From the sequence record MW845758.1: a stretch of DNA of 64,000 nt, one strand, 5' to 3'. Each line of letters begins with the position of its first letter. The first letter of the stretch is position 1. The notes under the pieces are model-generated. The model was not told where the DNA came from, made no database searches, and saw only the letters and a list, made by a program, of their open reading frames with translations. The position numbers and the translations under genes were made by a program. Of this stretch, positions 5,301 through 26,045 are shown piece after piece.

Positions 5301-5303
5301 TCC

Positions 5304-6131: not shown

Positions 6132-6134
6132 TTC

Positions 6135-6161
6135 AAGGCCCTTCGGGGCCTTTTCTTTTTT
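6135..6161 (+). terminator. Intrinsic terminator
   Basis: AAGGCCC-TTCG-GGGCCTT followed by TTCTTTTTT. Confidence 0.85.
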
Positions 6162-6183
6162 GATAGCGGTCAGGAGTTGAGTT

Positions 6184-7605
6184 ATGTCCTTCTATTCAAA
6201 GGCAGCGTTGCAGCTGATTTACGATCAGGTGAACCGGGATAACCCGGGACTCCCAGTACCGCTGTCCGCGAGTAACGCCGCCTTATCCAAAACCCCCGTG
6301 GCTGTGAATACCACAACCTACGGTCGTAACACCCGCGTGGAGTTCACCGCATTTCCCGGTTCGGGGCTGCAAGGCTCCATTACGTTGTACTACGACCGAG
6401 TAAGTTTGTCGAAACTTTACAGCCTTATACCGACCGTGTATTTGTCGGCAACCGTTACCACGCAACAAGCGGCTTTAACCGCGCTCAATGACGCACTGGG
6501 GCTGAGTTTAACCGCAGACGACCTGAGCACCCCAACGGCTGCGATTGCCGCACCGTCCACGGGATTACAGGCAGCAACGTTTGTGATAAAGACCACGTCG
6601 CCGGCGTACCTTGACCAGATAGTCTTTAACTACCAGATTAAATCCTCTGGCTTTTATCCGAGCTCGGGTCCGGGACCGAAGAACTTGCTCGTGGGTGATA
6701 AACTCATGGGGTATTTCGGTACTGTTGATACCACGGATTTGTTCTCGCATCAGGAATTCCTTACTGCGGCGTTGCTAAAAGGCACTACTGCAACACGCTA
6801 CACCGGAACAGAGGGATGGCACAAGTTCTATTACAATAGCGCCATCCTCTATTCCCCTATCACCCCGGTTGCAAGTAATATCAGCTGGGCATCGATTTAC
6901 AACGAAGGGTTGGTATTCGGCACAGATGACACGGGTAAATACCCAGTCACTGCAACACCGGTAAATCAATTACGCATCCTCGGTCGTGACTCCGCGATGG
7001 AAGGGAAGTTCTACTACAAGGTACGCTTACCGAGTTGTGGTGCTGACCCCTTCACACAGGCAACCAGTCTGGGGTCGGGTGACTACGCAGGCAGTGAAGC
7101 CCAGATGATCAGTTTCCTCAACTCCGGCAAGTGGGGTAAACTCACAGGGGCGTGGTGGACAAACTGGTGTATCTACAAAAACTCCGTTTCTAATAACCCA
7201 ACCACCCAGAACAAACTGGGAACTCCGAATATGGCGAGTTGGGCGAACAATGCCAAAACAGCGGCAGACGCGGGGTATTACTGGTGGCCGATTCTGGAAT
7301 TGGTCGACACGAGTAGCACAGTGCTTGGACTGGAGAGTGTGTTCGGTCAGATGGATCGCACGATTACGCCGGTTGTGTATAACGTAGAGCAGCAGTTGCA
7401 GGTCTCTGTGTTGCAGCTGGGTCAACCGAAAACGCTTGACTTCCAACCAATACCGTACAGCACTGAACAGTCTCTGTACGTGAAGCCACTTGTTCCGGGA
7501 CAACCGAAGACAATTGATTTCCGTCCGATTCCGTTTAAGGTCGAGATTTACACCCCGTCGAAAGTTGATTTGTCCAACACTAACGGTGATTTGGATGATT
7601 TCTAA
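6184..7605 (+). CDS. Tail-appendage cassette 1, subunit A (paralog N-domain + GPG/GYFG domain + C-terminal motif)
   Basis: VNRDNPGL/RNTRV/YYDRV N-domain; GPGPKNLLVGDKLMGYFG; WWPILELV; ends KVDLSNTNGDLDDF. Confidence 0.8.
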   Translation: MSFYSKAALQLIYDQVNRDNPGLPVPLSASNAALSKTPVAVNTTTYGRNTRVEFTAFPGSGLQGSITLYYDRVSLSKLYSLIPTVYLSATVTTQQAALTALNDALGLSLTADDLSTPTAAIAAPSTGLQAATFVIKTTSPAYLDQIVFNYQIKSSGFYPSSGPGPKNLLVGDKLMGYFGTVDTTDLFSHQEFLTAALLKGTTATRYTGTEGWHKFYYNSAILYSPITPVASNISWASIYNEGLVFGTDDTGKYPVTATPVNQLRILGRDSAMEGKFYYKVRLPSCGADPFTQATSLGSGDYAGSEAQMISFLNSGKWGKLTGAWWTNWCIYKNSVSNNPTTQNKLGTPNMASWANNAKTAADAGYYWWPILELVDTSSTVLGLESVFGQMDRTITPVVYNVEQQLQVSVLQLGQPKTLDFQPIPYSTEQSLYVKPLVPGQPKTIDFRPIPFKVEIYTPSKVDLSNTNGDLDDF

Positions 7606-7618
7606 TTGAGGTATTAAC

Positions 7619-8620
7619 ATGTCTTTTACACTACGTTGGAATAACCCCAACACCATCGCGACGGTGGTCAACATCTATCGCGACACCAAGGACATCTCAC
7701 CGAGTGCTTTACCTGCACCCCTCGCAACACTCAGTAACGGCGAAACGGAATACCGCGATACCACCGCAGTGTCAGGACAAACGTACTATTACCTGACAAC
7801 CGTCACCGCTAACGGGAAAATCGTCGCCACAGCTAGTCAGAAATACACAGTCGCTGTGCGTCGTGGTATCGGTCCGAACACCCTGATCAGCGGCGACGAC
7901 CGTTTGGGCTTCTATGGCGCAGTGGCTACTGAAGATCAGTGGTACGGCAGCCAGCTCCCGGCCGGGTTCTTGGCAATGTTCCCGACTGCCTTTGCAACGA
8001 CCGATCGTGTGCCGCTGAATAAGTTCACTCGCGGTGGGAAAATCTTCTACATGCTCACCAGTATCAGTCCGGGATGGGCCACGTGGGCTGACCTTTACCG
8101 TAATGGACTGGTGTATGGCACAGGTGACTTTGGACCAACAGGTGGTCACGGCACGTTAACAGATACGTTGCAAGATGCGAAGATTATCTCGCAAAATGAA
8201 ACGTATCGCATGCGTCTAGTACGCGGACTGTCTTCAGCATCGGCTTCCCCGGCGTTTGCGTTTAATGAGGCGTATAACGCTAAGACCCACGACGAGACAG
8301 ACTTGACTGCGTTCAACGAATATAACGATTTGTTCTACCCGATTGTTGTTGATGTACCGAACAAACAACGGGTACCGAACGTGTCTCAGTTGGCGACGAC
8401 GTATCTGGGCTTTAACGGTTCTGCGTCTGGACAGCCTTATACCAACGGTGGGGTTGTCTGCATGGAGCACGATACCGCGCAAGACCGTGTGATGCATCGT
8501 GGGTTACAAACCCCACTTACCGTGGCACAGTTACCCGCCGTACAGGCAATGCAACGTATCACTTACAGCGCACCAACCCAGCAGGGGCGTTACATCCCCA
8601 TCATTGAATTGGTAGAGTAA
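7619..8620 (+). CDS. Tail-appendage cassette 1, subunit B (FnIII/Ig-like + GPG domain)
   Basis: FTLRWNN..VNIYR..Y.D....GQTYYY (FnIII-like); GIGPNTLISGDDRLGFYG; ends YIPIIELVE. Confidence 0.8.
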   Translation: MSFTLRWNNPNTIATVVNIYRDTKDISPSALPAPLATLSNGETEYRDTTAVSGQTYYYLTTVTANGKIVATASQKYTVAVRRGIGPNTLISGDDRLGFYGAVATEDQWYGSQLPAGFLAMFPTAFATTDRVPLNKFTRGGKIFYMLTSISPGWATWADLYRNGLVYGTGDFGPTGGHGTLTDTLQDAKIISQNETYRMRLVRGLSSASASPAFAFNEAYNAKTHDETDLTAFNEYNDLFYPIVVDVPNKQRVPNVSQLATTYLGFNGSASGQPYTNGGVVCMEHDTAQDRVMHRGLQTPLTVAQLPAVQAMQRITYSAPTQQGRYIPIIELVE

Positions 8621-8629
8621 GGAGCAGTC

Positions 8630-9565
8630 ATGACCATTCGTGTAAGTTGGCCTTCACAGGCTGACAAGGCATTGACGTCCATTGAAATCTACCGAAAGGT
8701 GGGGCACAGTGCGACCATCGATGTAAACAATCCCGGTACCCCAATCGCAACGGTCGCAGGGACTGCGACACAGTACGTAGAGGATGTGGCGAATCTCACG
8801 GAGAAAACCGTCTACACGTATTGGGTAGCTGCGGTTAAAGGGACAGAACGTCTGTTCAGTGCTCCCATCGTTCAGGGGTTTTATCTGGACACCGGTCCCG
8901 GTCCTCAGAAACTGCTGATGGGCGACTGGTACGCAGGCTACTTTGGTTTTGTCTCCACCACCGACTTCGCGTCGCGTGACGACATCATCGGTGCCTCGGG
9001 CGGACTGACTGCCGCACAAATTGCGATGTTCAATGCGAGTGGCTTTACCGGCTGGTACAAGTTCGTGTTTAAAGGGCGTATCCTTTTCTTCCCGAATAAA
9101 GCCACCGGCTACAACACGATTCACCAGACATATAACGCCGGACTGGTGTACGGGGTCGATGGGAACGGTTCAATCGTTCCTACCAGTGGTGTAGCAACGG
9201 CGCAAAATGCAATGTTCACCAAAAACGGTTATCGGTATCGTGTGCGTCTGCCGTACTACACGGATTATGACAAAACAAACGGAACCGATTACGACAGTGG
9301 TGAATGGCGTAATACGATGGCGAGGATGTTCGCAACAACGTACAACTTCTCCACTACCGACCAAGGTAAGTTTGCCTCTCAACCAATATTGACTACAGGC
9401 AGTAGCGGTTCCCCGGCAGACCCGGGTTCTTCGGCGATGGCACCGCTGTACGGAACCACCACTACCATGCACAACTACGGCTACAACCCAACCGCCATCA
9501 CGTACGACAGCAATGCCAGCTACACATGGTACATGTTCTTTGTGTTTGAGTTGGTTCTGCCTTAA
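8630..9565 (+). CDS. Tail-appendage cassette 1, subunit C (FnIII/Ig-like + GPG domain)
   Basis: IRVSWPSQ..IEIYR..YTYWV; TGPGPQKLLMGDWYAGYFG; ends FELVLP. Confidence 0.8.
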   Translation: MTIRVSWPSQADKALTSIEIYRKVGHSATIDVNNPGTPIATVAGTATQYVEDVANLTEKTVYTYWVAAVKGTERLFSAPIVQGFYLDTGPGPQKLLMGDWYAGYFGFVSTTDFASRDDIIGASGGLTAAQIAMFNASGFTGWYKFVFKGRILFFPNKATGYNTIHQTYNAGLVYGVDGNGSIVPTSGVATAQNAMFTKNGYRYRVRLPYYTDYDKTNGTDYDSGEWRNTMARMFATTYNFSTTDQGKFASQPILTTGSSGSPADPGSSAMAPLYGTTTTMHNYGYNPTAITYDSNASYTWYMFFVFELVLP

Positions 9566-9576
9566 CGGAGTAAATC

Positions 9577-11013
9577 ATGGGGCCTTACAGCTACTCGTCT
9601 CTGGCACTGTTGTGTCGACAAGTAAACCGTGACAACCCCGACCTTCCCTACCCGCTCAGTCCAGATAACATTATCTTGCTGGGTGGGCCTTACACGACAT
9701 CCTTAGGTACGTCCGGGCGTAATACCCGGACGATACTCAACGGTAAAAGTGGGGCAGGTTTTGTAGGGCGTCGCGAATTCTTTTACGATCGTCTTGATAT
9801 CGGCAAGTTCTTTAATGGGATTACCGTGGTGTTTGATGCCCCGGGCAGTTCATTAGCCTACGCCGATTTATTACCCGCATTAAATGAACAATACGGGTTA
9901 GGGTTGCAAGCCACCGACATCTCCAATGGTGCAACCAAACTCACCAACGGTTATACCGCGACTGCTGTAACGCTCACGATAGCGACAACATCCCCTGCGT
10001 TTACCGGGTCGTTGTCGGTGCAGTGGACGAGACTTCCGGTGGGTCTGTTCCCGGATTCCGGTCCCGGTACCAAATCGATGTTGATTGGGGATATGCAGGC
10101 AGGGTACTTCGGCATCGTGTCGGGCAGCGAGATGGCAAGTTCACTCGATGTCTTTAATGAGATTCTCGGTGACGACTCCGCTTCTTCTCCGCTTATCAAC
10201 TCGAACCTGTTCTGGTTGAAGTTCGCTTATAAAGGCGAGTACCTGTTCTTCCCAAGCGTAAACATCGGTAACACCACGTGGAAAGCATTGTACGACCGTG
10301 GTGCGGTGTACGGTAACGACAGTACAGGTGTTTACCCGCCGGCTGGCTCAACGTTAACGCCACAAAATAAAATCATTGCGGTGGACACGTCAGAAGGGAC
10401 AGTGGGCTTTAATCCGCGAGTGCCGACGTATGCAGGTGAAGACTGGGTCACTGGCGTACGTTCCCACACGGGTGAACTGTATCTGTTACTGGGCCGTGTG
10501 TTCAGTGGTAGCTACACAGCAGGCGACTGGGATACCCTCACGGCGACTCAACCCACACTCGATACCACCACGGCGTTTATGTTCCTGACCGCGTCTGGAG
10601 TCGATGGAGGGAGTGTGTGGGGTACGTCGATGTCGGTAGGGTCTACGACCTACATCGCGAAGACCCGCAATTACGGCTGGCGGCCATTCTTACGGTTAGC
10701 AGATATCAGTAATGTCGTGTTCGCGGTTAAAGACGTCAAGGGCGTGGCTGTAAACCGCCTGAGAGCGCCTGTGTTGCGCATTGATAACACGATTGACCCG
10801 AATATGCCTGTAAGGGTGGAGAACGTCTTAGGAACGCTTCTGCGCACGATTAAGAAGCCGTACTTTACGGGCGTTACTGTGGAACCGGTGACTGCCCCTG
10901 ATGACGTACACCCAAGCCGTCCGATTAAACCGTTCGGTGTAACGGTAACCTCTGTCTTTAGAAACAAAACCGACTTAGCCACCACCAATGGCAACTTAGG
11001 CGAATTCAATTAA
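9577..11013 (+). CDS. Tail-appendage cassette 2, subunit A
   Basis: VNRDNPDL/RNTRT/FYDRL; SGPGTKSMLIGDMQAGYFG; YGWRPFLRL; ends KTDLATTNGNLGEFN. Confidence 0.8.
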   Translation: MGPYSYSSLALLCRQVNRDNPDLPYPLSPDNIILLGGPYTTSLGTSGRNTRTILNGKSGAGFVGRREFFYDRLDIGKFFNGITVVFDAPGSSLAYADLLPALNEQYGLGLQATDISNGATKLTNGYTATAVTLTIATTSPAFTGSLSVQWTRLPVGLFPDSGPGTKSMLIGDMQAGYFGIVSGSEMASSLDVFNEILGDDSASSPLINSNLFWLKFAYKGEYLFFPSVNIGNTTWKALYDRGAVYGNDSTGVYPPAGSTLTPQNKIIAVDTSEGTVGFNPRVPTYAGEDWVTGVRSHTGELYLLLGRVFSGSYTAGDWDTLTATQPTLDTTTAFMFLTASGVDGGSVWGTSMSVGSTTYIAKTRNYGWRPFLRLADISNVVFAVKDVKGVAVNRLRAPVLRIDNTIDPNMPVRVENVLGTLLRTIKKPYFTGVTVEPVTAPDDVHPSRPIKPFGVTVTSVFRNKTDLATTNGNLGEFN

Positions 11014-11023
11014 GGAATCCATT

Positions 11024-12058
11024 ATGGCCTTACGCCTCTCGTGGACTAACCGCAACGTGGTTGCCAATGCGATAAACATTTATCGTGGTAATAGCGCGTT
11101 AGACCCACTTAACCTTCCTGCTCCGACTGGTACCGTTACGAACGGTGATGCATTCTACGTTGACCAGACTGCGGAGTTTGGTAAAACGTACTATTACATT
11201 CTCGGAACAAAAACCAGTAACGATGAAATCCTGACACCCAACCAACCAATACTGGTGGCTGATAACCGGGGTGCGGGACCTGCTGCACTGAAGTACGGGG
11301 ATGATAACCTCGGGTACTTCGGAACGTTATTGTCGTCTGAGTTCTTCACCAGTTCACACATCCGAGCAGCAGCGAAAGACACCTCTGGATTACCGTCAGC
11401 GTTATATGCCCCGACGTGGCACAAGATGATTCGTAACGGCAAAGTCATCTATCTGCCGGATATCGCTTTTGGTTCAACGACGTGGATGTCACTGTATACC
11501 GCGGGTCTGGTATACGGCATCGATGCCAACTACCCAGCAGATGCGTTGACCACAGGTTTAACACCGACCAATCAATTGGTGAAACTCTCACTGAACGGTG
11601 AAGACTATAAAGTCCGGTTGTTGCGTGGCTACAGTGACGGTTCACATGCGAACATCCTCAGTGCCGATATCAATGACATCAGCATGGACGATTACGCCGC
11701 GTCACAGCCTAACGAGTGGAGTGACCTTGCGTATGGGTTATTCAACTTCGTACCGCTTAAGCAGCACACGGTGAACTTTGCGGATATCGTTCTTGACAAC
11801 ATCATCGGTCCGGCTACGAATACAAGCAGCTCTTCGTCGAATGGTCCAACGATGACTGCCTCACGTATCACGATGCAGGAACGTACCACCACGGCGTTGA
11901 ATGTCACCCGCGCTCGGCGTAATGCAGCGTTCAGTAGTGTGGCTGCAAACTCACGTCCGAACCTTGCCAATATCCACTCGCACTCAACCGGGAACACGTG
12001 TCTTTGGTATCCGGTGATTGAGTTGATTGAAACCCCCACTGCTAACGTAACAGTCTAA
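11024..12058 (+). CDS. Tail-appendage cassette 2, subunit B
   Basis: LRLSWTN..INIYR..GKTYYY; GAGPAALKYGDDNLGYFG; WYPVIELIE. Confidence 0.8.
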   Translation: MALRLSWTNRNVVANAINIYRGNSALDPLNLPAPTGTVTNGDAFYVDQTAEFGKTYYYILGTKTSNDEILTPNQPILVADNRGAGPAALKYGDDNLGYFGTLLSSEFFTSSHIRAAAKDTSGLPSALYAPTWHKMIRNGKVIYLPDIAFGSTTWMSLYTAGLVYGIDANYPADALTTGLTPTNQLVKLSLNGEDYKVRLLRGYSDGSHANILSADINDISMDDYAASQPNEWSDLAYGLFNFVPLKQHTVNFADIVLDNIIGPATNTSSSSSNGPTMTASRITMQERTTTALNVTRARRNAAFSSVAANSRPNLANIHSHSTGNTCLWYPVIELIETPTANVTV

Positions 12059-12068
12059 GGAGCGAGCC

Positions 12069-12956
12069 ATGGGCATTAAACTTCAGTGGGACTCGCAGGC
12101 TGATCAGAATCTCGACGGAATTGAGATTTACCGTAGCGCCAGTCCTATCTCCACTACCGCACCCGGTACCCCGCTGATTACCCTCGCTGGTACTGCCACC
12201 GCGTACGAAGACAATACGGTTGTGAATAAGTCTATCTACTACTACCGTATTGCAGGGAAGAAAGGAACAGAACGTGCGTGGGGCGAAAACATCAGCTCGG
12301 GTTACTTCTCAGAAACCGGACCGGGGCGTACCTATCCTATCCGTGGAGATTGGAACGGTGGGATGTTTGATTACTTAGACATCGCTGATTTCATCACGCC
12401 TGCGGATCTGCTTGCCAAAGTACCCGCGCTTGGTAACTACGGTACCCGTGGTAGTTTTACCACGTGGTACAAAATGGCGTATAAAGGAAAGGTGTTGTTC
12501 ATCCCGAACACGTACGTAGTGACAGCAACGCAGGCCGAGTTGTACAAAATGGGTGTATTATTCGGAACAGATGACTTCGGTACCATCCCAACCGGAACAC
12601 CGTCCCCGGGTGTCAACCAGCGTACGAAGGTTAACATCAACGGGCTAGATTATATCCTACGCTGTCCACGTCTGTCGAACGTTCCTCTGACGCAGTATTT
12701 AACGGCGCAGGACGATACGATTGCCAGTGAGTGGCGCAGCACCGGGTCGAGACTTTCCCGTGCTACATTGGAAAGCGACAATGGCATGTTGCCAAGGCTG
12801 TGGGATAATACCAACTCTATGGCCGTTATCGGACCTCACTTAAACACCACCTCACTGGTTGGTGCACACGCGGCAGGTGCACCGGGTACGTTAGTGGGAC
12901 TCAACACCGGTACGCGATATGCGGCGTTGTTATTACTTGAATTAGTCATGCCTTAA
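12069..12956 (+). CDS. Tail-appendage cassette 2, subunit C
   Basis: GIKLQWDSQ..IEIYR..YYYRI; TGPG..IRGDWNGGMF; ends LELVMP. Confidence 0.8.
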   Translation: MGIKLQWDSQADQNLDGIEIYRSASPISTTAPGTPLITLAGTATAYEDNTVVNKSIYYYRIAGKKGTERAWGENISSGYFSETGPGRTYPIRGDWNGGMFDYLDIADFITPADLLAKVPALGNYGTRGSFTTWYKMAYKGKVLFIPNTYVVTATQAELYKMGVLFGTDDFGTIPTGTPSPGVNQRTKVNINGLDYILRCPRLSNVPLTQYLTAQDDTIASEWRSTGSRLSRATLESDNGMLPRLWDNTNSMAVIGPHLNTTSLVGAHAAGAPGTLVGLNTGTRYAALLLLELVMP

Positions 12957-12968
12957 CGGAGTCTTGCT

Positions 12969-14390
12969 ATGGGGTTTTATAACGGAACCGCGCTGGAGTT
13001 ACTCTGCCAACAGATTGTCACTGATAACCCCGGCCTCGCGGGACGTATTACCCCAGAGACTATCGTTGTTAACGGGTCAGCAGTGGCACGCAACGCGAAT
13101 GGGCGTAATACACAAATCACCGTTGTGGGTATCCCGGGGAAAGGACTCCTCGGTGAATTGGTGCTGTCGTACGACCGTATCAATTTAACATCGTTTACGG
13201 GAAACCTTTATTTGCCGGTTGAAATATCCAAGGGTGTCAACACCTATGCGGAAGCTCTGGCAGATATCAACGCGCAGCTTGGCCTAAACCTCACTGCCTC
13301 CGACCTCGCCGCCCCGAACAATGTGTTCACTGGTGGTGTGATGTTTGCCAGCCTGATCATTTCCATCAGTAATGCTTCTGCCCTGTACACGGGCGGATTG
13401 CGTATCAGTTGGCGCAGGGCAGCGGTGGGTGTTTATCCTGACTCTGGTCCGGGAACAAAAGAGTTACGCGTTGGGGATACTGAGTTTGGTTATTTCGGAC
13501 CGGTATCCGGTACACTAATGCCATCTAGTCAACAGCTTGTTAATGCGATTCTTGACGGCAGTGGTATTACACCGCCGACGATTGCAACACCAACGAGTCC
13601 TGACTGGATGAAGTTCTATTACAAAGGTAAAGTTGTCTTCGTTCCCAAAACGAACATGGTCGGGACGACATGGGACAACTATTACAAAGCCGGTTCGGCG
13701 TACGCAGCAGATGACCCGAACGGTTCACGATATCCCGGCACCGATAAGGTTGTGGTTGCGCAGGATAAAATCTTCCCGTTCATTTCCGATGGCAAAGCCG
13801 CGTACTTCCATCATCGTTTGCCACGCGGTTCCACAACTATACAGTCGGGTGCCAGTTTAAACGGTGAAGATTATGCACTGATGGCCAAAATCCTAGGCGG
13901 GGAGTGGGGGACAGAACCGGGCACGGTGTATCTAGGTGGTGGGACGTATTACATGTCTCAACACATTTACAACATCAATCAGCCTGAGTTTTATGCGATT
14001 CACAGCATGTTGGGTGTTATCTTCGGTGCTGCTATCCAAAAGGCGCAGGGTTACAACTACGTCCCGTGGCTTGAATTGATTAATCCAAACGAAACGGTGT
14101 TGCCGGTAAACATCTCCGACTCGACGTTAACGTTTGCCACCACCGCAGTAACCGGAACCCGTATTGAAGAAAACGACAGAATCTTCCCTGTTGTGTTTGA
14201 GTACGTGGTTACGCTGCACCTGACCCCAACAGTTCCGGCCGGTCAAATCACGGATTCGCTGAGTCCTGCTGTCTTCACTACCATTTCTACCCAGAAACTC
14301 ACTCCGGTGGTTCCGATTGGGTCGGTCGTGAAGCCGCCAGTGAAAACCAATTTATCTACCACGAACGGTGACTTAACCGGGTTCAATTAA
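12969..14390 (+). CDS. Tail-appendage cassette 3, subunit A
   Basis: DNPGL/RNTQI/SYDRI; SGPGTKELRVGDTEFGYFG; YVPWLELI; ends KTNLSTTNGDLTGFN. Confidence 0.8.
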   Translation: MGFYNGTALELLCQQIVTDNPGLAGRITPETIVVNGSAVARNANGRNTQITVVGIPGKGLLGELVLSYDRINLTSFTGNLYLPVEISKGVNTYAEALADINAQLGLNLTASDLAAPNNVFTGGVMFASLIISISNASALYTGGLRISWRRAAVGVYPDSGPGTKELRVGDTEFGYFGPVSGTLMPSSQQLVNAILDGSGITPPTIATPTSPDWMKFYYKGKVVFVPKTNMVGTTWDNYYKAGSAYAADDPNGSRYPGTDKVVVAQDKIFPFISDGKAAYFHHRLPRGSTTIQSGASLNGEDYALMAKILGGEWGTEPGTVYLGGGTYYMSQHIYNINQPEFYAIHSMLGVIFGAAIQKAQGYNYVPWLELINPNETVLPVNISDSTLTFATTAVTGTRIEENDRIFPVVFEYVVTLHLTPTVPAGQITDSLSPAVFTTISTQKLTPVVPIGSVVKPPVKTNLSTTNGDLTGFN

Positions 14391-14405
14391 TAGGAGAGTA
14401 ACGCT

Positions 14406-15392
14406 ATGGCATTCACATTGCGCTGGCGTAACGATAACAAAATCCCGACTGTTGTACGTTTATATCGGGACACTAAAGCGATTGACCCGACAGCTTTGCC
14501 TGCGGTTTTGGCGACATTCACCAATGGTGAAACTGAGTACACAGACACCTCGGTAGTCTTTGGGGCAACGTATTACTACTTCACTACTGTAACGGCCAAT
14601 GGTCGAACAGTGAACGGGATTAACGCCACCTACACTATCGAACAGCGTCGTGGGGTGGGACCGAACTCTCTTCAATACGGTAACGACCAATTAGGATATT
14701 TTGGTTCATTGCTGTACGACGATCAATTCCCTCTCGGTCAATTCCAACAAAAAGTACAAGACCAATTCTTAGCGCGTGGTGCTGGGTATAACGCCGCTTA
14801 CCGATTAGCGATGGACAAGTTCATCCGCAACGGTAAAATCCTGTACATGTTGCCTCAAGCGTATGTCACATACGGCTTTACGTGGGCGAGTCTCTACGCT
14901 GCGGGAATGGTTTACGGGCAGGATGATGCAGGCCCGGCTGGCGGCCACGGAGCTTTAGCGGATGCGATTCAAGACGCTGGCTGTACGTGGAAAGGTGATA
15001 AGTATCGCTTGCGTATGCTTCGTGGTTTAAGCGACAGCAACGAACCTAAAGCTTTCCCATTTGCCGCTAAGTACAATGGTGTTTCTCACGACACCTCTGA
15101 CTTAGTTGGATTTAACGAATTCAACGATCTGTTTTACGCGAGTCAGTGGGCCTTCCCACTGAAACGTCGTGTGCCGGGTTGGCGCAACGTTGCACCGTTC
15201 ACAAGTTCCAGCGCCAGTTATGCGGACGGGTACATGTGCATGGAACACGACACTCAGGGAAATAACTCCCTGTATCGTGGAACCATCGCTGCAACAATTA
15301 CAACGGATCAGTTGACTTTAATTAATTACAAAGCTCATGACCGGGCAGTGGCGCAATACATTCCGGTGATTGAGTTAGTGGAGGATTATTGA
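14406..15392 (+). CDS. Tail-appendage cassette 3, subunit B
   Basis: FTLRWRN..VRLYR..GATYYY; GVGPNSLQYGNDQLGYFG; YIPVIELVE. Confidence 0.8.
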   Translation: MAFTLRWRNDNKIPTVVRLYRDTKAIDPTALPAVLATFTNGETEYTDTSVVFGATYYYFTTVTANGRTVNGINATYTIEQRRGVGPNSLQYGNDQLGYFGSLLYDDQFPLGQFQQKVQDQFLARGAGYNAAYRLAMDKFIRNGKILYMLPQAYVTYGFTWASLYAAGMVYGQDDAGPAGGHGALADAIQDAGCTWKGDKYRLRMLRGLSDSNEPKAFPFAAKYNGVSHDTSDLVGFNEFNDLFYASQWAFPLKRRVPGWRNVAPFTSSSASYADGYMCMEHDTQGNNSLYRGTIAATITTDQLTLINYKAHDRAVAQYIPVIELVEDY

Positions 15393-15393
15393 G

Positions 15394-16296
15394 ATGGGAA
15401 TTAAATTAACATGGCCGTCTCAAACCGCGAAAGGAATCACTGGGATTGAGATTTATCGTGCGGTGGGGGCCAGTAGTACAATCGACAGGGCAAACCTACC
15501 AGCACCACTAGTGACGCTGACCCCGGGTGCCACAACTTACGAAGACAACACCGTTGTAAACGCCACGGTTTACAACTACTGGATTGCCTCGGTTAAGAAT
15601 GGGGAACGTGTCTTTTGCTTTACGTTACAGCAAGGCTATTTCTTAGACACGGGACCGGGGCCGCAATCTTTGTTGATGGGTGATTGGGACACGGGGTACT
15701 TTGGTCGGGTGTCGAACACGGACTTGTTTGACTACTTGTCGCTTAATGCGGCGCTTGGCACGAACGTGACCACCGAGAGCCCGAACTACTGGAACAAATT
15801 CATCTTCCAGAACCGTATACTGTTTATTCCCGATAAACGTCTGGGAGCTTTGTCTTACCAACAGTTATACAGCTTCGGTGTCGCCTATGGAACAGACGAT
15901 AGCGGTAGCATTGTACCAACTGGGGCGGCAACCCGCAATCAGCGTAGAGTGGTCGCGAGGGACGGACGTAATTACGTGGTACGGTTACCTCGTGGGGCGA
16001 AGTACAGCAGTGCCGGTGGGGTTGACCAAACAACAGAATCAGTTCTGTTGCAGGGCGAGTGGCGTAACGTTATTGAACGGATGTTCCGTAATGGGTCAGG
16101 TACCTATCCACGGTTTGGTGAGATTGCGGTTGATACCACGAACGGCGTTACTGAAGCGCATTCGTGCATTTTTGGTGTTCTTTACTCGACCACCGTTGGT
16201 GTACGGGCAGTTGGATCATCCCCACACACGGTCGGAACTATCAACGTCACTACCGTGGGTTCCTACCAACTGGTTCTCGAGTTAGTTATTCCGTAA
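15394..16296 (+). CDS. Tail-appendage cassette 3, subunit C
   Basis: GIKLTWPSQ..IEIYR..YNYWI; TGPGPQSLLMGDWDTGYFG; ends LELVIP. Confidence 0.8.
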   Translation: MGIKLTWPSQTAKGITGIEIYRAVGASSTIDRANLPAPLVTLTPGATTYEDNTVVNATVYNYWIASVKNGERVFCFTLQQGYFLDTGPGPQSLLMGDWDTGYFGRVSNTDLFDYLSLNAALGTNVTTESPNYWNKFIFQNRILFIPDKRLGALSYQQLYSFGVAYGTDDSGSIVPTGAATRNQRRVVARDGRNYVVRLPRGAKYSSAGGVDQTTESVLLQGEWRNVIERMFRNGSGTYPRFGEIAVDTTNGVTEAHSCIFGVLYSTTVGVRAVGSSPHTVGTINVTTVGSYQLVLELVIP

Positions 16297-19392: not shown

Positions 19393-20034
19393 TTATTCTA
19401 CGGTCGGATTAAACTCCGCCGCATCCAACTCTGCGTAGTTGCCCTGTTCCGCAAATGCACGGATACGGACTTTGTACGCAGTCAGCGCAGTATGCAGTTG
19501 GGCATTACGTGCCACGATAACCGAGTACAGGCCAATCGTGTCTTCCGCCGTCCAGTCTTCCAACGCTTGGTTATCAGACGTCAGCCAATACTCAGGCACC
19601 GTCTCCGTCTGGGTGAAACCAGACAGCGTAACCAGTGTATCACCACCGGTTTGGAAATCGTGGTCTTTGTACGTAATGTCTGCAGCGACCGCTGAAGCGT
19701 ACGTGCTGTTCGCCTGTTCCAATTTCTTGGTCAGCAGCGTATAGCAATACGTCTTGGTAGACTGCAGCTCTTTCAGGTAGTCTTTCACCTGAATGCCCAA
19801 CACATCTTTGATAAACGCTTGAGCCTGCTTCAGGGTATAGGCGGCCTCGAACTCGGTTAACCCTTGTTCTTGGAGTTGACGCTTAGCGTCTTTCTCACTT
19901 AACCCTTCCAGCAAGGCGTAATGCAAGCGTTTCGCCAGAGAGACTTCACCGTTCGGATCGAAGAACATTCCGTTGCGGTCAATCTGGCCATCACCATTTT
20001 CAAATCGTGCTTTTATCTCGTCAGCACTAAGCAT
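19393..20034 (-). CDS. DUF4376-like protein (tail-fibre-associated)
   Basis: C-terminal half ITYKDHDFQT...YWLTSDNQ...HTALTAYKVRI resembles DUF4376; overlaps the upstream gene by 22 nt. Confidence 0.6.
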   Translation of the reverse strand: MLSADEIKARFENGDGQIDRNGMFFDPNGEVSLAKRLHYALLEGLSEKDAKRQLQEQGLTEFEAAYTLKQAQAFIKDVLGIQVKDYLKELQSTKTYCYTLLTKKLEQANSTYASAVAADITYKDHDFQTGGDTLVTLSGFTQTETVPEYWLTSDNQALEDWTAEDTIGLYSVIVARNAQLHTALTAYKVRIRAFAEQGNYAELDAAEFNPTVE

Positions 20035-20561
20035 TCTTTCTCTCCTACGAATCCGACTTGAGTCAATGTGTCATAGGACACGATGTCAAAGTCAGCCCGG
20101 AGATCGAATCGATACTGCAAATTCGGCAGTGCCTGATCGTTTTCTTGGAATGCACGCATGAACATCATGTCATCGAAATACTGACACGCATTTTCCGGGT
20201 TACGAATCATCCACACCGGGACATTCGGGAAAGACAACGCTAACGCGACCAGAGACTGACCGCCCGGCTCGAGGTTTGACTCGCGCAGAAGGTTCAGTTT
20301 AGACGCCGGAGCTGCCAGCAGACGTTCTTCAAAGCCTGGGTTGCGCTTCTCGATCTCCGCCAGTGAGTTGTGGCCGTTCTCTACGCAGTTGATTGGTACC
20401 ACTACGTTAATGGCAAAACGGTTCATCAACTTCAACCACTGGTCATTGAAGGCATCACCCGGCACGATAGCATGAATGTTAAACAGCTTATAGTGCTGGA
20501 GAAAGGCTTCAATCTTGCGGTTATCGTACTTCGTAAAATTCTGCAGTAGCAGGCTTTTCAT
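20013..20561 (-). CDS. Hypothetical protein in the radical-SAM operon
   Basis: 182 aa; overlaps both neighbours, implying translational coupling. Confidence 0.7.
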   Translation of the reverse strand: MKSLLLQNFTKYDNRKIEAFLQHYKLFNIHAIVPGDAFNDQWLKLMNRFAINVVVPINCVENGHNSLAEIEKRNPGFEERLLAAPASKLNLLRESNLEPGGQSLVALALSFPNVPVWMIRNPENACQYFDDMMFMRAFQENDQALPNLQYRFDLRADFDIVSYDTLTQVGFVGEKECLVLTR

Positions 20562-21915
20562 TTTTGAATTGTTCCTTGCGGTCAGATTGTTCTACAGCCA
20601 TGGTCATCTCACGAATCGCGGTGACGTGTAAGGGCTGTTCTGCGGCTCTACCGATTTCTGCTTCGGCTTGCATCGCAGCCTTCTGGCGACACTGATAACA
20701 GTTACACACAGATTTGTCGTACTGAGATTCGTACGACCCGAAACGTTGTTTCCACCACTGCGCTACTAAGAGCTTCGCGGTAGTCCAACCACACTGACGA
20801 CGCTCGCCGTGGTATTCTTTACGGGCGTCTTCTTCGCCGTCGCCGTTCTCGTAGGCAGCCGCCACACACGATGCACACAGGTGCTTCGCAGGACAACCGA
20901 TACATTGATCCGGATACGACTTCCACTGCTCCTGCACTTCCGCCAACAGCTTACCGCCGTCGGTGTTTACGATTTGCTGGCCTTCGAGTTTACCGATGGC
21001 TTGGCGCGTCGTTACGGTTGACATGAAGCGGTTACAACCGAAGATGTTACGGTCGAAACCTAAACAGGTCATGTACACCGTAGTACCACAGTGCGGACGC
21101 AGACGTTGTGGGTCATAGCGTACGGAATCATCATGGATGAGTTTCTCACGCCAGTCTGGGTTCCACAGCTGATCCACATTCAGACCGTCTGGTAATACGT
21201 GGCCGATTTCAGAGTTCGGGTCTAAGTGCAGACCTTTCTCAATGAAATACTCCGCCACTTCAATAAACTGGTTCGCAATCGCCAGTGCGCTCTGACGCGG
21301 TAACACGTCTTCGAACACCACGTTGCCGTATAAACGACCGCCCCCGGTCACGTCAATCAGCGATTTCATACCAGCCGCGTACTGCATCAGGGTTTCTTTG
21401 GTGAACGTTGCTTTCACACCCAGTTCACGAATGCCGATATCCTGTAACAGTTTATAGCCGTCGACTGCTGCTTGGTAAGACCCTTGACGGGACGTCGTAA
21501 AGATTCGGTACTTGTCGTGGGTTTCGGGTAACCCATCGATAGATACACCGATAGAGAGCACGTCTTTCCAACGGTTCAGAATCTCCAGCGCCAACGGTTT
21601 GTTAAACAACGTACCGTTAGTTGAGATAGAGAACACGTACGGCAAGCCGTACTGCTTACACAGCATCTCTGCTGTTTCAAACGCCGCCAGTAAGAGCTTA
21701 GGTTGCATGAACGGTTCACCACCGATGATATCGATGATAATCCCTTCAATCCCCTGCGTCTTAGAGAAGAAACGGTGTTTGTCGCGATTAAAGCAGGCGT
21801 GGATAAAATCTACGACATCAGCGACTTTGTTATTACGCGGATACTTACGCTCGTAGCAATACTCACAGTCGAGGTTGCACGATAGGTTGGTGACTATTTG
21901 ATACGTGGCATCCAT
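20521..21915 (-). CDS. Radical SAM/SPASM peptide maturase
   Basis: CNLDCEYC (CxxxCxxC), IIGGEPF, ISTNGTL, VSIDG..HDKYR; SPASM-like Cys set PHCG..TC..GCNRF..CIGCPAKHLCASC..RQCG; extra CNCYQC. Confidence 0.92.
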   Translation of the reverse strand: MDATYQIVTNLSCNLDCEYCYERKYPRNNKVADVVDFIHACFNRDKHRFFSKTQGIEGIIIDIIGGEPFMQPKLLLAAFETAEMLCKQYGLPYVFSISTNGTLFNKPLALEILNRWKDVLSIGVSIDGLPETHDKYRIFTTSRQGSYQAAVDGYKLLQDIGIRELGVKATFTKETLMQYAAGMKSLIDVTGGGRLYGNVVFEDVLPRQSALAIANQFIEVAEYFIEKGLHLDPNSEIGHVLPDGLNVDQLWNPDWREKLIHDDSVRYDPQRLRPHCGTTVYMTCLGFDRNIFGCNRFMSTVTTRQAIGKLEGQQIVNTDGGKLLAEVQEQWKSYPDQCIGCPAKHLCASCVAAAYENGDGEEDARKEYHGERRQCGWTTAKLLVAQWWKQRFGSYESQYDKSVCNCYQCRQKAAMQAEAEIGRAAEQPLHVTAIREMTMAVEQSDRKEQFKNEKPATAEFYEVR

Positions 21916-21917: not shown

Positions 21918-22811
21918 CTATCTCCCCTTCTTCTTAATAGGATTTAACCAATTCATGATGTACGTGTACGCGTCTTCACCAATAGCATTGGCGATTTTAT
22001 TGCATCCACGGTCAACCACGATTGGTACGTTTTCGGGAACTTGAACATCCCCGTTCGGTTGGCTCACAACAATTTCACTGCAGGCATTACACACATCTTC
22101 ATCGAAGAACTTCTCGATTTTGATAATGGTGTCAGTCCCGTTCATGACATTCAGTCTGCGCATGTTATCTTGCAGACGCTCAAAGCCGTAGATGAAGTTC
22201 AGTACGTGGTCAGGTGACAGCACTTTCTTCATCTGGTTATCGAACAGGTAATTCATGCCGATAAAGCCGAGGTGGTGAATTGCGTCCTGCATTTTCAACA
22301 TGCCTTCGTGCCAGCGCATGTTCCCGACTTTCTCACGGGTTAACACCGACCACAAAATCACGTTGTCCAGCTGGGCCATCACTTCGAACGCTTCGGTATC
22401 ACCGCTACGTGCAAAGTCCATTAACCCGCGCTCTTCATCGTCGTAACCATCAATCGACACCACCACACGGTGAAATGTTTTCAAGAACTCGACTTGCTCT
22501 AAACGTAACTTTCGCCCGTTCGTGAAAAGGTAATGCGTAGCGGAAGGACGTTCAGCCCGCATCATCTCGACCGACTCGACAAGTTTCTTGTAAGCCAGTA
22601 ACGGCTCACCACCTGTCCAGATGATCTCTTCCACTTCGGGATTCTTTTTCAGTAACTCCATCATTGCCTCTTCATGGGTTTTACGCGACACATCCCCCTT
22701 GACCATGTGCATCTCACCCGCACAAAACGCGCAGTTCAGGTTACACTTCGCCGTCAAAGCCACGTTGATGGTCTTGGCGGGTGAGTAGATGTCTTTAGCT
22801 AGCGTCCGCAT
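21918..22811 (-). CDS. Second radical SAM protein (short, no full SPASM)
   Basis: CNLNCAFC, WTGGEPLL, FTNG, VSIDG; only CNAC plus one more Cys at the C-terminus. Confidence 0.88.
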   Translation of the reverse strand: MRTLAKDIYSPAKTINVALTAKCNLNCAFCAGEMHMVKGDVSRKTHEEAMMELLKKNPEVEEIIWTGGEPLLAYKKLVESVEMMRAERPSATHYLFTNGRKLRLEQVEFLKTFHRVVVSIDGYDDEERGLMDFARSGDTEAFEVMAQLDNVILWSVLTREKVGNMRWHEGMLKMQDAIHHLGFIGMNYLFDNQMKKVLSPDHVLNFIYGFERLQDNMRRLNVMNGTDTIIKIEKFFDEDVCNACSEIVVSQPNGDVQVPENVPIVVDRGCNKIANAIGEDAYTYIMNWLNPIKKKGR

Positions 22812-23721
22812 CCGTCAATCCATAAAGACGACGTTGGAACGAGAACAGAGGGTCTGTGTCACGTACATCTTCACCGGCTTTCAACAAACGCGGTGAGCGA
22901 TACGCATCGTACAATGCGTTAAGAACTTCCTGACGCTCGCCCATGCGGATAAGGTCATCGAGTTCTACCGGGGACTCTACAAACGGGGCCAGCGCATCTT
23001 GTTCATCTTTCGAGAACTCAGAAAGCTGGGATTGCAACAGGAAGCGAATCAGTTTACGATCATCCGCCGTCGAGTTCGGGACTGCACCAAACTCAGTCTG
23101 GCACAAAAACGCCATCCACGGTTTCCGGATACGCTTGGTCTGCTCGAGCGGGTCGGCGATGTACGACCACTCTTGCTTGTGCGCATCCCATGCAAACTTA
23201 TAACTGTACGCGAGTAAGTCTGCCAAGCAGTCGATATTCGCGGTTTCAAGGCCAGAGAAGGGGTGATACATTTCACGGTCTTTCTCCACGCTTCCAGTGC
23301 CAGCACCCACAAGCTTAAACAGGTGTGGCCAGCTACCACAGTAGTCGCTGCTGTAACTACGCACACACACCGGACGCATGCCGAGTTCTTTAAAGGACTC
23401 GAACATCAATTCCAGCGGGGTACTATAATTCAGTACGCTATCTGTGAAAAAATACTTGTCATTGACAAGCTTCCCGGTATAGCCTACACCGCCAGTGGCG
23501 AACTGAATGGATTTCACGTTCAACTTACCGACCGTGGCTGTATCCGTCACAGTGTACGTCTTGTTCGTGAAATCACGGCCACGGAGTTTAGGCCAGTCGA
23601 ACTGATCCATCGCAATCAGTCGGAGTTCGTCATTAACGTGCGCGTTAACAGAATCCGGTGACGAGATATGAATCGGGTAATTCAAACTCGTGCGATAGGC
23701 AAGATGATCGTTACTCTTCAT
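22795..23721 (-). CDS. Hypothetical protein between precursors and radical SAM genes
   Basis: 308 aa; 12 nt from precursor 3 and overlaps the rSAM gene by 17 nt; no motif recognised. Confidence 0.75.
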   Translation of the reverse strand: MKSNDHLAYRTSLNYPIHISSPDSVNAHVNDELRLIAMDQFDWPKLRGRDFTNKTYTVTDTATVGKLNVKSIQFATGGVGYTGKLVNDKYFFTDSVLNYSTPLELMFESFKELGMRPVCVRSYSSDYCGSWPHLFKLVGAGTGSVEKDREMYHPFSGLETANIDCLADLLAYSYKFAWDAHKQEWSYIADPLEQTKRIRKPWMAFLCQTEFGAVPNSTADDRKLIRFLLQSQLSEFSKDEQDALAPFVESPVELDDLIRMGERQEVLNALYDAYRSPRLLKAGEDVRDTDPLFSFQRRLYGLTDADAS

Positions 23722-23733: not shown

Positions 23734-23943
23734 TTAACTTGGGTAGGTGACTTGCTTCGCGCCACCTGAGCTACTCCAGCTACAGGTACCCCCGCAGTTG
23801 TACGCGCCCGCGCGAATGCCACCCAAGTTGTTGGTGTTGTTACACGTCCCGTTGTTGGCGATATAACTGTTCGCCTGAGCCGTGGTAATATATTGTTCAA
23901 TATTCGCGACACGCGTACCGATGTCTTTTAATCCGACAGCCAT
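23734..23943 (-). CDS. Precursor-like peptide 3 (short core)
   Basis: RBS AGGAGGT; leader MAVGLKDIGTRVANIEQ homologous to the other two; core CGGTCSWS. Confidence 0.8.
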   Translation of the reverse strand: MAVGLKDIGTRVANIEQYITTAQANSYIANNGTCNNTNNLGGIRAGAYNCGGTCSWSSSGGAKQVTYPS

Positions 23944-23953
23944 TCGCTACCTC

Positions 23954-24382
23954 CTACGGTCCAGAACAACCTGCCCCGCACGAGCCGGTACAGCCCGAAC
24001 TACAACCGCCAGAGCAGCCGCCAGAACATTTACCAGAACAGCTGCCTGAGCAACCACCAGTACACGTTCCTGAACAACCACCACCGCAGTTACCACCACA
24101 ACTACCCGCACATCCACCGGTACAACTTGAACTACAGTTCCCCGAACACGCAGATGAACAGCCAGATGAGCAGTTACCGGTACAACCACCGGAACAGCCG
24201 TTACCGCACGTCCAGCTACAGCTTCCGTTACAGTGGAGCGCTGCAGGCGTGAACCCGTTTAGTAAGTCGGCATTATTTGTCGTTCGACCCGAGATATAAT
24301 TCTGTACCCCGGCTTGTGTTTTAAGTGCAGTGTTTTCAATATTGACCACACGACTTTGTACTGATTTAAGTGAAATTGCCAT
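23954..24382 (-). CDS. Precursor-like peptide 2: 50-aa leader + 23 perfect Cxxx units
   Basis: RBS AGGAG; core CNGS-CSWT-...-CGAG-CSGP counted manually (92 aa). Confidence 0.9.
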   Translation of the reverse strand: MAISLKSVQSRVVNIENTALKTQAGVQNYISGRTTNNADLLNGFTPAALHCNGSCSWTCGNGCSGGCTGNCSSGCSSACSGNCSSSCTGGCAGSCGGNCGGGCSGTCTGGCSGSCSGKCSGGCSGGCSSGCTGSCGAGCSGP

Positions 24383-24390
24383 GTTCGCTC

Positions 24391-24780
24391 CTAGGGTCCA
24401 CTACAGCCAGCACCGCAGCTGCCCGAACATCCGCCTGAACAACCACCGGAGCACGCACCACCACAAGTACCAGAGCAACCGCCACCACACCCACCTGAGC
24501 AGGATGAAGAACAGCCACCGCCACAACCACCGGAACAGGAACCTGAACAATTTCCCGTACAGACACCACTACAGCTACCAGAACAACTCGAGCAACCATG
24601 ACTACAGCCCGATGAACAGGTCCAACTGCACGAACCATTACAGCGCGCCCATGTATCAGGCTGCCCTGCGAGTAGTATCGCGTTATGAACCTTCGCATTT
24701 GTCTGCGCGTCAACACTCGGGCCGGTAGCCGCTTGGACTCGGTCAATACGTCCACTTAGGTCTTTAAGTGAGATCGCCAT
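24391..24780 (-). CDS. Precursor-like peptide 1: 46-aa leader + 21-Cys Cxxx core
   Basis: RBS AAGGAAAGG; core CNGS-CSWT-...-CGAG-CSGP with one 3-residue unit (CSS). Confidence 0.9.
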   Translation of the reverse strand: MAISLKDLSGRIDRVQAATGPSVDAQTNAKVHNAILLAGQPDTWARCNGSCSWTCSSGCSHGCSSCSGSCSGVCTGNCSGSCSGGCGGGCSSSCSGGCGGGCSGTCGGACSGGCSGGCSGSCGAGCSGP

Positions 24781-24845
24781 TACCTTTCCTTTTTAATAAG
24801 AACCGGGCACTCGCCATATAGACGAGGCCCGTGTGTAATTAAACT

Positions 24846-26045
24846 TTATTTCGTACCGGCATCCGCCTGTACGTCGTCGCGAGTTGTGAGGTTCGCGTTG
24901 ACGTGGACGTTGGCTTGCACCACACCGCCGTACTGCTTGTGCAGGTATTGCGTGTGTGGGTCAGCAGCAGACAGGTGGTTAGACAGCGTCTGGTTAACCG
25001 CAGTGATGTTACCTTCGTTCGTGGTGACACGACGGGCGAGTGCAGTGAGGTCCGTACGCAGCTGGTCGATTTGCTGCTGGGTATCACCTTGTCCGGATTT
25101 CAAGTCATCAATCTGATCTTGCAGACTGTCGCAAGTTTGCTCAAGGCCACTTACCTTGTTCTGCAGAATCAATACCAATGAATTGAGGTTTGCTACAATC
25201 AGCGTCATCTTCTGGTAGTTTTGGTCTACCGTATTCAGCTGGTCATTAAACGCGGCCAGTGAACTGACGATGGCATCGATACGGCCACCCAACGCGGTGT
25301 CTGCAGCTTGCAGGTTACCGATTTGAAGAACGGTCGCATCAATCGCTGCTTGTACCCCAGCAATCAGGGCACGGATTTCAGTGGCGGTTAAACCGTCAAT
25401 CTGATGGATATCGAGATTGTGGACATTGCCCGTTGCGTTGATGTGGGCATTCAGCGCATCTAAGAAGTTATTTTTGATGCTTTCGATGATATCCTTGATT
25501 TTCTCAAGCTGTACAGAGTCGCCTGAGCCAATCGCATCGAGAATGCCCGAGAGCATGGTGATAACGTATTCAAAACCGAAGATATCACCGATGTCTTTAA
25601 ACGCTGGCGCGCCGGGTAAGGTATCCGGGAAATCAATGAGGTCTGGGAAGCTGACCTTTTTGTTATCGATATCCAGAATGGCAATGGCCTGCTCAATCGC
25701 CAAGATGTTCGCCGACATCGGGCCACCGACGACTTGGGCCGATACCGTGATATCCGTTGGAATCTTGCTATTGGTAACCACTACCGCCATCACAATCTCT
25801 TGGTTACCGGAGAGTTTCTGGTAAGCCGGATGGGCAAAGATTAACTCGTAGTCGGTACCGCGGACATACGGAGTGGTGGGCGAGTTCGTCGCACGCAGTC
25901 TAAAACTATCTGCGTAAAACGGACCTGCCGGAAAAGCAAAAGACCGGTTGACTTTACCGGAACCCAAAACCACGGGGATGGTGACCGCGTTCGAAGTCAG
26001 CGTTCCTTTTAAGTCAAGCGGGTATTGGTAAATAATGTCACTCAT
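24846..26045 (-). CDS. Short tail-fibre-like virion protein with coiled coil
   Basis: N-module PAGPFY..GTDYEL shared with the three large fibres; long heptad region; HLSAADPHTQY motif typical of fibre proteins; start taken at MSDII. Confidence 0.75.
   Translation of the reverse strand: MSDIIYQYPLDLKGTLTSNAVTIPVVLGSGKVNRSFAFPAGPFYADSFRLRATNSPTTPYVRGTDYELIFAHPAYQKLSGNQEIVMAVVVTNSKIPTDITVSAQVVGGPMSANILAIEQAIAILDIDNKKVSFPDLIDFPDTLPGAPAFKDIGDIFGFEYVITMLSGILDAIGSGDSVQLEKIKDIIESIKNNFLDALNAHINATGNVHNLDIHQIDGLTATEIRALIAGVQAAIDATVLQIGNLQAADTALGGRIDAIVSSLAAFNDQLNTVDQNYQKMTLIVANLNSLVLILQNKVSGLEQTCDSLQDQIDDLKSGQGDTQQQIDQLRTDLTALARRVTTNEGNITAVNQTLSNHLSAADPHTQYLHKQYGGVVQANVHVNANLTTRDDVQADAGTK

Follow-up and report, generated by a model that had tools for sequence, protein, structure and literature searches.

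Cysteine-repeat proteins encoded in the fibre module of Erwinia phage pEa_SNUABM_11: candidate tail-fibre parts and putative radical SAM targets

Results

Three small genes beside a fibre gene

The DNA analyzed here (the window) is a stretch of 64,000 nucleotides (nt) from sequence record MW845758.1, Erwinia phage pEa_SNUABM_11 (251 kb, genus Wellingtonvirus). Next to a gene for a coiled-coil fibre protein, it carries three small paralogous genes, here called P1, P2 and P3 (Table 1). Their products share an N-terminal module, followed in P1 and P2 by a tail of Cys-x-x-x (CXXX) repeats, and the genes neighbour others for radical S-adenosylmethionine (rSAM) enzymes. We propose that the trio are fibre parts that retain their N-terminal module and are targets of the CXXX-family rSAM enzymes, rather than precursors of a released peptide, a reading to which we assign a probability of roughly one half.

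P1, P2 and P3 are real genes under purifying selection. The window is ∼81% identical to phages Kwan and Wellington, and in the comparison with Kwan third codon positions account for 72 of the 100 nucleotide differences in P1 and 75 of the 103 in P2. Synonymous codon changes outnumber non-synonymous ones by 58 to 20 in P1, 68 to 13 in P2 and 16 to 11 in P3, and an AGGAG-type ribosome-binding site is present at all three genes. The records of Kwan, Phobos, Huxley and CR5 place opposite-strand open reading frames (ORFs) across the Cys-rich genes, and the SPN3US record has a wrong-frame ORF in this place (the annotation sites concerned are L002, 8000–8880; L024, 7410–7745; and L003, L004 and L005, 4180–5025). 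Owing to this mis-annotation, the true proteins are missing from reference proteomes.

Table 1. Features of the locus, with positions in the 64,000-nt window and protein lengths in amino acids (aa)
Feature	Position	Strand	Remarks
P1	24391–24780	minus	129 aa, CXXX-repeat protein; N-terminal module residues 1–55, Cys-x-x-x tail residues 47–129
P2	23954–24382	minus	142 aa, CXXX-repeat protein; without annotation in the source record
P3	23734–23943	minus	69-aa paralogue; N-terminal module only, no CXXX tail
P1 amphipathic helix, residues 5–18	24727–24768	minus	position taken from alignment to the predicted P2 helix
P2 helix, residues 5–18	24329–24370	minus	AlphaFold2 monomer; exact R-h-x-x-h-E at residues 11–16 (motif scan)
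P3 helix, residues 5–18	23890–23931	minus	exact R-h-x-x-h-E at residues 11–16
Hairpin and U-rich run	24804–24831	minus	separates the fibre stop codon from the ribosome-binding site of P1
Fibre protein, coiled-coil	24846–26045	minus	399 aa; homologue of SPN3US gp167; phrog_2163 virion structural protein, E 3e-102
Conserved accessory protein	22795–23721	minus	308 aa; phrog_8030
Smaller radical SAM enzyme	21918–22811	minus	297 aa; PF04055, E 6e-15; CxxxCxxC motif in translation
Radical SAM/SPASM enzyme, putative CXXX-tail maturase	20521–21915	minus	464 aa; best match TIGR04115
Conserved protein	20013–20561	minus	182 aa; phrog_7988; start overlaps rSAM gene end; synteny
DUF4376 protein, cassette end	19393–20034	minus	213 aa; PF14301, E 2e-6; synteny

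A shared N-terminal module and CXXX tails

Alignment of 15 modules from five phages defined a common N-terminal unit of ∼55 residues, consisting of helix 5–18, a second helix, an N-x-x-x-L-x-G turn and a C-x-G-x-C-S-W junction. Met1, one Thr and the junction are invariant in this alignment, Leu5 and the Gly of the turn are nearly so, and the N-terminus MA-I/V-S-L-K is conserved among modules. The AlphaFold2 monomer of P2 has a 14-residue helix at 5–18 (predicted local distance difference test score, pLDDT, ∼80), then a break and a further helix at 23–34. After the junction, P1 and P2 run on into ∼20 uninterrupted Cys-x-x-x units with very high Cys, Gly and Ser content. P2 contains 23 Cys, every spacing being exactly four residues (22 consecutive C-x3-C), and 19 of the spacings among the 21 Cys of P1 are of four. 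P3, with 3 Cys, ends shortly beyond the junction.

These features bear on two claims of the initial annotation, made by a model from the sequence of the locus alone. It had envisaged three Cys-rich strands presented by a homo- or 1:1:1 heterotrimer; as P3 lacks a tail, a 1:1:1 heterotrimer would have only two. It had also seen no double-Gly cleavage site or protease. No protease is recognized in the cassette, in keeping with this claim, whereas a Gly-Gly is in fact present in P3 and in a number of orthologues. Conservation is limited to the second Gly, which is part of N-x-x-x-L-x-G, and judged from the alignment the Gly-Gly is not a conserved double-Gly site.

By NCBIfam profile, P1 scores 25.7 bits and P2 28.3 bits against TIGR04114 (cutoff 20), while P3, which has no repeat, gives no match. 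All three match phrog_6085 of PHROGs (P1, E 1.6e-28; P2, E 1.3e-33; P3, E 6.7e-24). The TIGR04114 scores place P1 and P2 in the CXXX-repeat radical-SAM-target family (TIGR04114 / PF27846). Against the full-length model TIGR04117, P2 reaches 15 bits (cutoff 50) and P1 has no match; bacterial CXXX members, which carry a Tat-like start motif, score 43–55 bits. A search of Pfam returned nothing significant for P1, P2, P3 or ten relatives, a weak match to PF23779 (E 0.02) being dismissed. The module profile met only chance matches among PDB sequences (E >1), and a word-index homologue search with P2 residues 1–60 found no match, P2 being unannotated in public records.

Cellular members of the family look different at their N-termini. 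A twin-arginine-like start is found in Bacteroidales CXXX proteins (P0130, P0134, P0154 and many others), and these cellular proteins are therefore probably exported folded. Another large CXXX group, of 175–225 aa, has a different conserved N-domain of ∼105 residues.

Sequence signals for a possible three-stranded coiled coil

The initial annotation had pointed to hydrophobic residues at positions 5, 8, 12 and 15 of the helices and to the motif R-h-x-x-h-E (h, hydrophobic), exact in P2 and P3 and nearly so in P1, and the ORF translations confirm both observations. The four positions are L/L/I/V in P1, L/V/V/I in P2 and L/I/V/I in P3. Residues 11–16 read RVVNIE in P2, RVANIE in P3 and RIDRVQ in P1, with Q16 in place of E. 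R11 falls on heptad position g and E16 on position e; the trimerization motif has the register Arg(g)-h(a)-x-x-h(d)-Glu(e), and beta-branched d positions are associated with trimers, not dimers (PMC3653964).

The bare 6-mer occurs four times in the ∼20,000 residues of the window ORFs, and two of these occurrences are those in P2 and P3, which represent one event by descent. As a bare 6-mer, the motif is thus weak evidence; its conservation across relatives does demonstrate selection. Of 41 non-redundant modules (<80% identical), 33 have R at position 11 and 35 an acidic residue at position 16 (E in 28, D in 7). Positions 12 and 15 are hydrophobic in all 41, a and d positions being always hydrophobic, and the two d positions are Ile or Val in 31 and 30 modules. 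The conserved R11, acidic residue 16 and mostly Ile/Val d positions would fit a trimer, not a dimer.

How Arg and acid are distributed among the paralogues is also informative. P1 keeps Arg11 in 19/19 phages and is without Glu16 in 7 of them, while P2 and P3 always keep the acidic residue and sometimes lose the Arg. Within the Derbicusvirus group, Arg11 and an acidic residue 16 never occur together in one chain. This pattern seems to fit inter-paralogue pairing, i.e. a heterotrimer, more easily than three homotrimers.

Two further claims of the initial annotation, both about the neighbouring fibre protein, fared less well. The fibre segment ALGGRIDAIV had been described as a similar heptad; against the helix profile, GGRIDAIV scores 0.1 bit (E 35), much like random ORFs, and with such a chance-level score homology of this segment to the module helix is rejected. 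Nor is the motif, said to be common in phage fibres, found in strict form in the fibre genes of the window. The last 40 aa of the 399-aa fibre (24846–24965, minus strand) are its most conserved part, and its homologues in two distant loci, L028 (2715–4355) and L030 (2671–3990), have a terminal helix that carries R-h-x-x-h-E. The conservation of the fibre C-terminus and the presence of these helices appear compatible with docking, without proving it. A trimeric coiled coil that docks onto a fibre is plausible.

Fusions to fibre-like proteins

The main comparative finding comes from relatives in which the same parts are fused. A T7-like contig (L025) encodes a 215-aa protein in which a fibre N-domain and a coiled coil precede the junction and a CXXX tail. 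Downstream lie genes for a small rSAM, an accessory protein and an rSAM/SPASM enzyme 35% identical to the 464-aa enzyme of the window (E 1e-65). The N-domain of the 215-aa protein shares 36% identity with the N-domain of a collagen-like protein that the same phage encodes; proteins of the collagen-like kind are trimers. On a 213-kb phage contig (L023), a 568-aa protein of virion-structural type ends in the junction and ∼25 CXXX units, and rSAM genes follow; the family profile matches this protein from position 35 onwards and no earlier, which leaves it without the helix. The phrog_6085 profile, from about position 3–7, also aligns to internal segments of 185–258-aa proteins. N-domains of two fused proteins match the tail-fibre family phrog_5073, and fused homologues have longer helices at the position of the module helix.

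Since there are fusions that lack the short helix yet come with an rSAM cassette, the unit that accompanies the cassette is junction plus tail, and the helix looks like an interchangeable N-terminal part for attachment or oligomerization, not a dedicated recognition leader. The module can also be joined to other partners. In locus L031 (7001–7633; P0044), the P3 module is followed by an extra 140-aa C-terminal domain, which suggests that it is an adaptor for variable payloads. P0006 and P0015 are likewise fusions of the P3 module to an extra C-terminal domain without assigned fold (range 80–140 aa). In favour of a tail-fibre component, the genes of the trio lie in the fibre module and their products are homologous to segments of fibre proteins.

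The cassette and its neighbours

Upstream of the trio lie the 399-aa fibre gene, whose product has coiled-coil-type matches over residues ∼180–385, and three giant genes, which form one paralogue family in SPN3US (gp168–170 equivalents). The cassette is placed between the giant fibre genes and the genes for DUF4376, endolysin and tail chaperone. Within it, the genes for the 464-aa rSAM and the 182-aa protein overlap by 41 nt (20521–20561) and those for the 308-aa protein and the 297-aa rSAM by 17 nt (22795–22811), suggesting translational coupling. SPN3US virion proteins include gp167 and gp168–173, and the rSAMs and accessory proteins gp161–165 were not detected in virions (PMC5694885). This contrast between virion fibres and non-virion gp161–165 fits assembly factors acting on a structural substrate.

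The best NCBIfam match of the 464-aa enzyme is TIGR04115 (112.8 bits; cutoff 350), followed by PapB (101 bits; cutoff 340) and the SCIFF maturase (52 bits), both also below their cutoffs. The large rSAMs of all three phage lineages, namely those of the window type, L025 and L023, have the same best match, with 127–173 bits in the other phage cassettes, and PapB is second-best throughout (101–149 bits). Homologues of the 308-aa protein are present in every cassette. Its AlphaFold2 model (pLDDT 87) has no match in PDB (best E 0.55) and matches only its own orthologue in BFVD; these fold searches revealed no protease or leader-recognition fold. Searches of Pfam, NCBIfam and PHROGs likewise found no protease, exporter or leader-recognition domain among the nine cassette proteins, and the rSAM alignments start at residues 7–12, leaving no N-terminal leader-recognition extension. 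A host protease could conceivably remove the N-terminal module. Cleavage after the helix by the prohead protease (A-x-E) was considered and rejected: the motif is not conserved there, and the enzyme acts on head proteins.

The hairpin between the fibre gene and P1 has a folding energy of –22.8 kcal/mol (z –3.55), and none of 200 shuffled sequences was as stable. It may be a terminator or attenuator, perhaps setting the ratio of fibre to trio expression. Elsewhere in the window, positions 26–16296 (plus strand) hold ∼16 consecutive same-strand genes of 275–478 aa that look like paralogues. This array may correspond to the ‘paralog family B’ head proteins of SPN3US listed in PMC5694885.

Distribution

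Profile searching across 1.84 billion representative proteins yielded 26 matches, and 17 loci were found in IMG/VR, all on contigs of 107–250 kb. A scan of 185,579 bacterial and archaeal genomes revealed no relative; a 2179-aa bacterial match (P0012) was discarded as spurious, with GEVED repeats, 2 Cys and ∼5 bits per stretch. Exactly three modules, in the same order and of similar sizes, are present in 24/24 jumbo-phage loci, the distant L028 and L030 included, and P3 orthologues occur in 24 phage records.

Some loci have additional rSAM genes. Between P1 and P2, the metagenomic relative L014 (6418–7329) has an extra 303-aa radical SAM gene, as does a second such relative, L016, in the same place; its product resembles the 297-aa enzyme of the window. 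Six radical SAM genes surround the trio and fibre gene in L028 (1–11810), and there are four in L030 (4078–11825). In these two loci the CXXX tails are longer, P1 and P2 being 170–185 aa.

Discussion

We envisage that, late in infection, the phage rSAM/SPASM enzyme would cross-link the Cys-rich tails, aided by the second rSAM and the 308-aa protein. The cross-links would probably be thioethers, because disulfides cannot form in the reducing cytoplasm. The N-terminal module would stay on the protein, and its helix would bundle into a short parallel three-stranded coiled coil, P1:P2:P3 being more likely than three homotrimers. This bundle would fix the cross-linked tails to a virion fibre at its distal end, for which the 399-aa coiled-coil protein is the prime candidate. 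A wider generalization, which we offer tentatively and with less confidence, is that at least three unrelated kinds of lytic phage (jumbo myoviruses of the SPN3US type, a T7-like podovirus and a further phage of 213 kb) use an rSAM/SPASM enzyme to cross-link covalently, at the fibre tip, a domain with Cys at every fourth residue, delivered in jumbo phages by a conserved P1:P2:P3 heterotrimeric mini coiled coil.

Several observations weigh against this interpretation. The helix of the AlphaFold2 monomer spans about two heptads (14 residues), which is short for an autonomous coiled coil, and the conserved Ile/Val3 lies off the heptad. The strict R-h-x-x-h-E motif is present in only 17 of the 41 modules, Arg11 is not conserved in the fused proteins, and the motif is not fully diagnostic of trimers in any case (PMC3653964). 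The argument for a heterotrimer comes down to about two independent substitution events. As for the tails, that of P2 is without confident structure in the AlphaFold2 monomer (pLDDT <50), and the rSAM scores are far under the TIGR04115 cutoff, making the cross-link chemistry only putative. The hairpin upstream of P1 may uncouple expression of the fibre gene and P1. Finally, there is no direct evidence of P1, P2 or P3 in virions. Their ORFs are absent from the SPN3US proteomics databases, and the mis-annotated Cys-rich proteins were undetectable by virion proteomics because the search database left them out. The P1 tail is also without Lys or Arg, all of these residues in P1 lying within 6–46; every member of the trio carries Lys or Arg among its first 50 residues.

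Part of this evidence could be accommodated if the module were retained as an adaptor that does not trimerize by itself, each helix binding singly to the C-terminus of the 399-aa fibre, or the paralogues pairing with the three giant fibres. A helix of some two heptads with Ile/Val3 conserved off the heptad would suit such binding, as would the location of three small paralogues beside three giant fibre genes of one paralogue family and the fact that the fibre C-terminus is its most conserved part. The R-h-x-x-h-E helices that end the L028 and L030 fibre homologues suggest a mixed helical bundle. However, the T7-like and L023 phages have one CXXX protein fused to its own fibre part, in which self-association follows the fibre, and the Arg(g)/Glu(e) pair with a beta-branched d is what is predicted of a three-stranded coiled coil; we find single-chain binding somewhat doubtful. 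Alternatively, the helix might serve chiefly to be recognized by the maturation machinery, be it the 308-aa protein or the rSAMs, and owe its conservation to this, whether kept afterwards or not. Strong conservation of MA-I/V-S-L-K and R11/E16 is in line with this, and so is the pairing of rSAMs that lack a leader-recognition extension with a separate accessory protein in every cassette. Against it, both the L023 fibre protein and P0142 lack the helix while retaining junction and tail, in L023 together with the rSAM cassette; Arg11 is lost in fused forms; and the 308-aa protein is without a leader-recognition-like fold. On balance we consider this unlikely.

A more conventional view would be that the trio encodes an ordinary RiPP (a peptide that is made on ribosomes and post-translationally modified). 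The module would then be a leader that guides the rSAMs and is cut by a host or unrecognized phage protease, and the cross-linked Cys-rich peptide would be freed at lysis as a bacteriocin, signal or metal binder. P1 and P2 do pass the TIGR04114 cutoff and adjoin an rSAM/SPASM gene, the module lies directly upstream of the core as leaders do, and the bacterial family members are small and probably exported. Yet the cassette, conserved across three phage lineages, has no protease, exporter or leader-recognition domain and sits inside the fibre module. The same core is C-terminal in fibre-like proteins of 185–568 aa, P3 is a module without a core, and the L031 module bears a folded extra domain. 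These observations render a released peptide decidedly improbable. Comparative evidence of this sort, namely the fibre fusions and the lack of a recognizable protease, exporter or leader-recognition domain, gives good support to the view of the initial annotation that the modules are not ordinary RiPP leaders. Lastly, the tails could be metallothionein-like binders of metal or Fe-S clusters that serve the nearby rSAMs and are neither substrates nor virion parts. Their very high Cys, Gly and Ser content and the Fe-S enzymes nearby would agree with this, but being an rSAM target is what defines the family (TIGR04114), the tail occurs in fusion with fibre proteins, the three paralogues are conserved, and the strict four-residue period and conserved junction suggest a templated structure. 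We regard a metal-binding role of this kind as scarcely credible.

If the trio are indeed retained fibre parts matured by rSAM enzymes, they would be, as far as we have searched, the first virion structural protein matured by enzymes of peptide natural products. We found no paper linking phage rSAM genes to Cys-repeat or fibre proteins, although not all journals were covered and a prior description is possible. The idea would join rSAM peptide cross-linking, a matter of RiPP enzymology, to phage tail-fibre assembly, two fields so far apart, and would account for the two or more radical SAM genes in the structural modules of many jumbo phages. It would give the CXXX-repeat family its first biological role, and would reveal a route by which a virus can build a covalently stabilized extracellular structure inside a reducing cytoplasm. 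A heterotrimeric mini coiled coil would have been overlooked through mis-annotation, even in the model phage SPN3US, and three missing genes would be added to the annotation of SPN3US and >20 relatives. Existing virion proteomics data could bear on the idea without new experiments.

Comparison with known systems

The predicted helices resemble the short trimeric coiled coils of coronin-1, cc-beta and GCN4 variants. Register and residues match in P2 and P3, and the relatives share the conserved Arg and acid and the beta-branched core. The trio differs in that its helix spans only about two heptads and in that the motif is incomplete in P1 and many orthologues.

With modular phage tail fibres and adhesins, the trio has in common that its genes lie in the fibre module, that homologous tails are found where fibres have their C-termini, and that a conserved N-terminal module is combined with variable C-terminal payloads. 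No solved fibre or adhesin matches the trio in sequence or fold, and a tip built through enzymatic cross-linking would be something not known for fibres. The T4-type distal-tip adhesins may offer a further analogy.

Ranthipeptide and sactipeptide systems (PapB/freyrasin, SCIFF) also involve Cys-rich repetitive substrates, and PapB is the second-best match of the large phage rSAMs. Unlike ranthipeptides, the phage tails have no acidic acceptor at i+4, that position being taken by the next Cys. The phage cassette also has no leader protease or exporter, and its substrate is probably a retained structural protein.

The closest relationship is to the bacterial CXXX-repeat rSAM target system (TIGR04114/TIGR04117/TIGR04115), which to our knowledge is defined in silico only and has no biochemical characterization. 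Long uninterrupted Cys-x-x-x arrays, passage of the TIGR04114 cutoff by P1 and P2, and a neighbouring rSAM/SPASM enzyme with TIGR04115 as best match are common to both. Bacterial members (Bacteroidales, ∼100 aa) have a twin-arginine-like signal, whereas the phage proteins have no signal and instead carry the helix and C-x-G-x-C-S-W junction, or whole fibre domains. The phage maturases score 113–173 bits against the TIGR04115 cutoff of 350, and the phage cassette adds a second rSAM, the 308-aa protein and a setting in the fibre module. The most fitting classification for the trio and its cassette is as a fibre-associated phage variant of this CXXX-repeat radical-SAM-target system.

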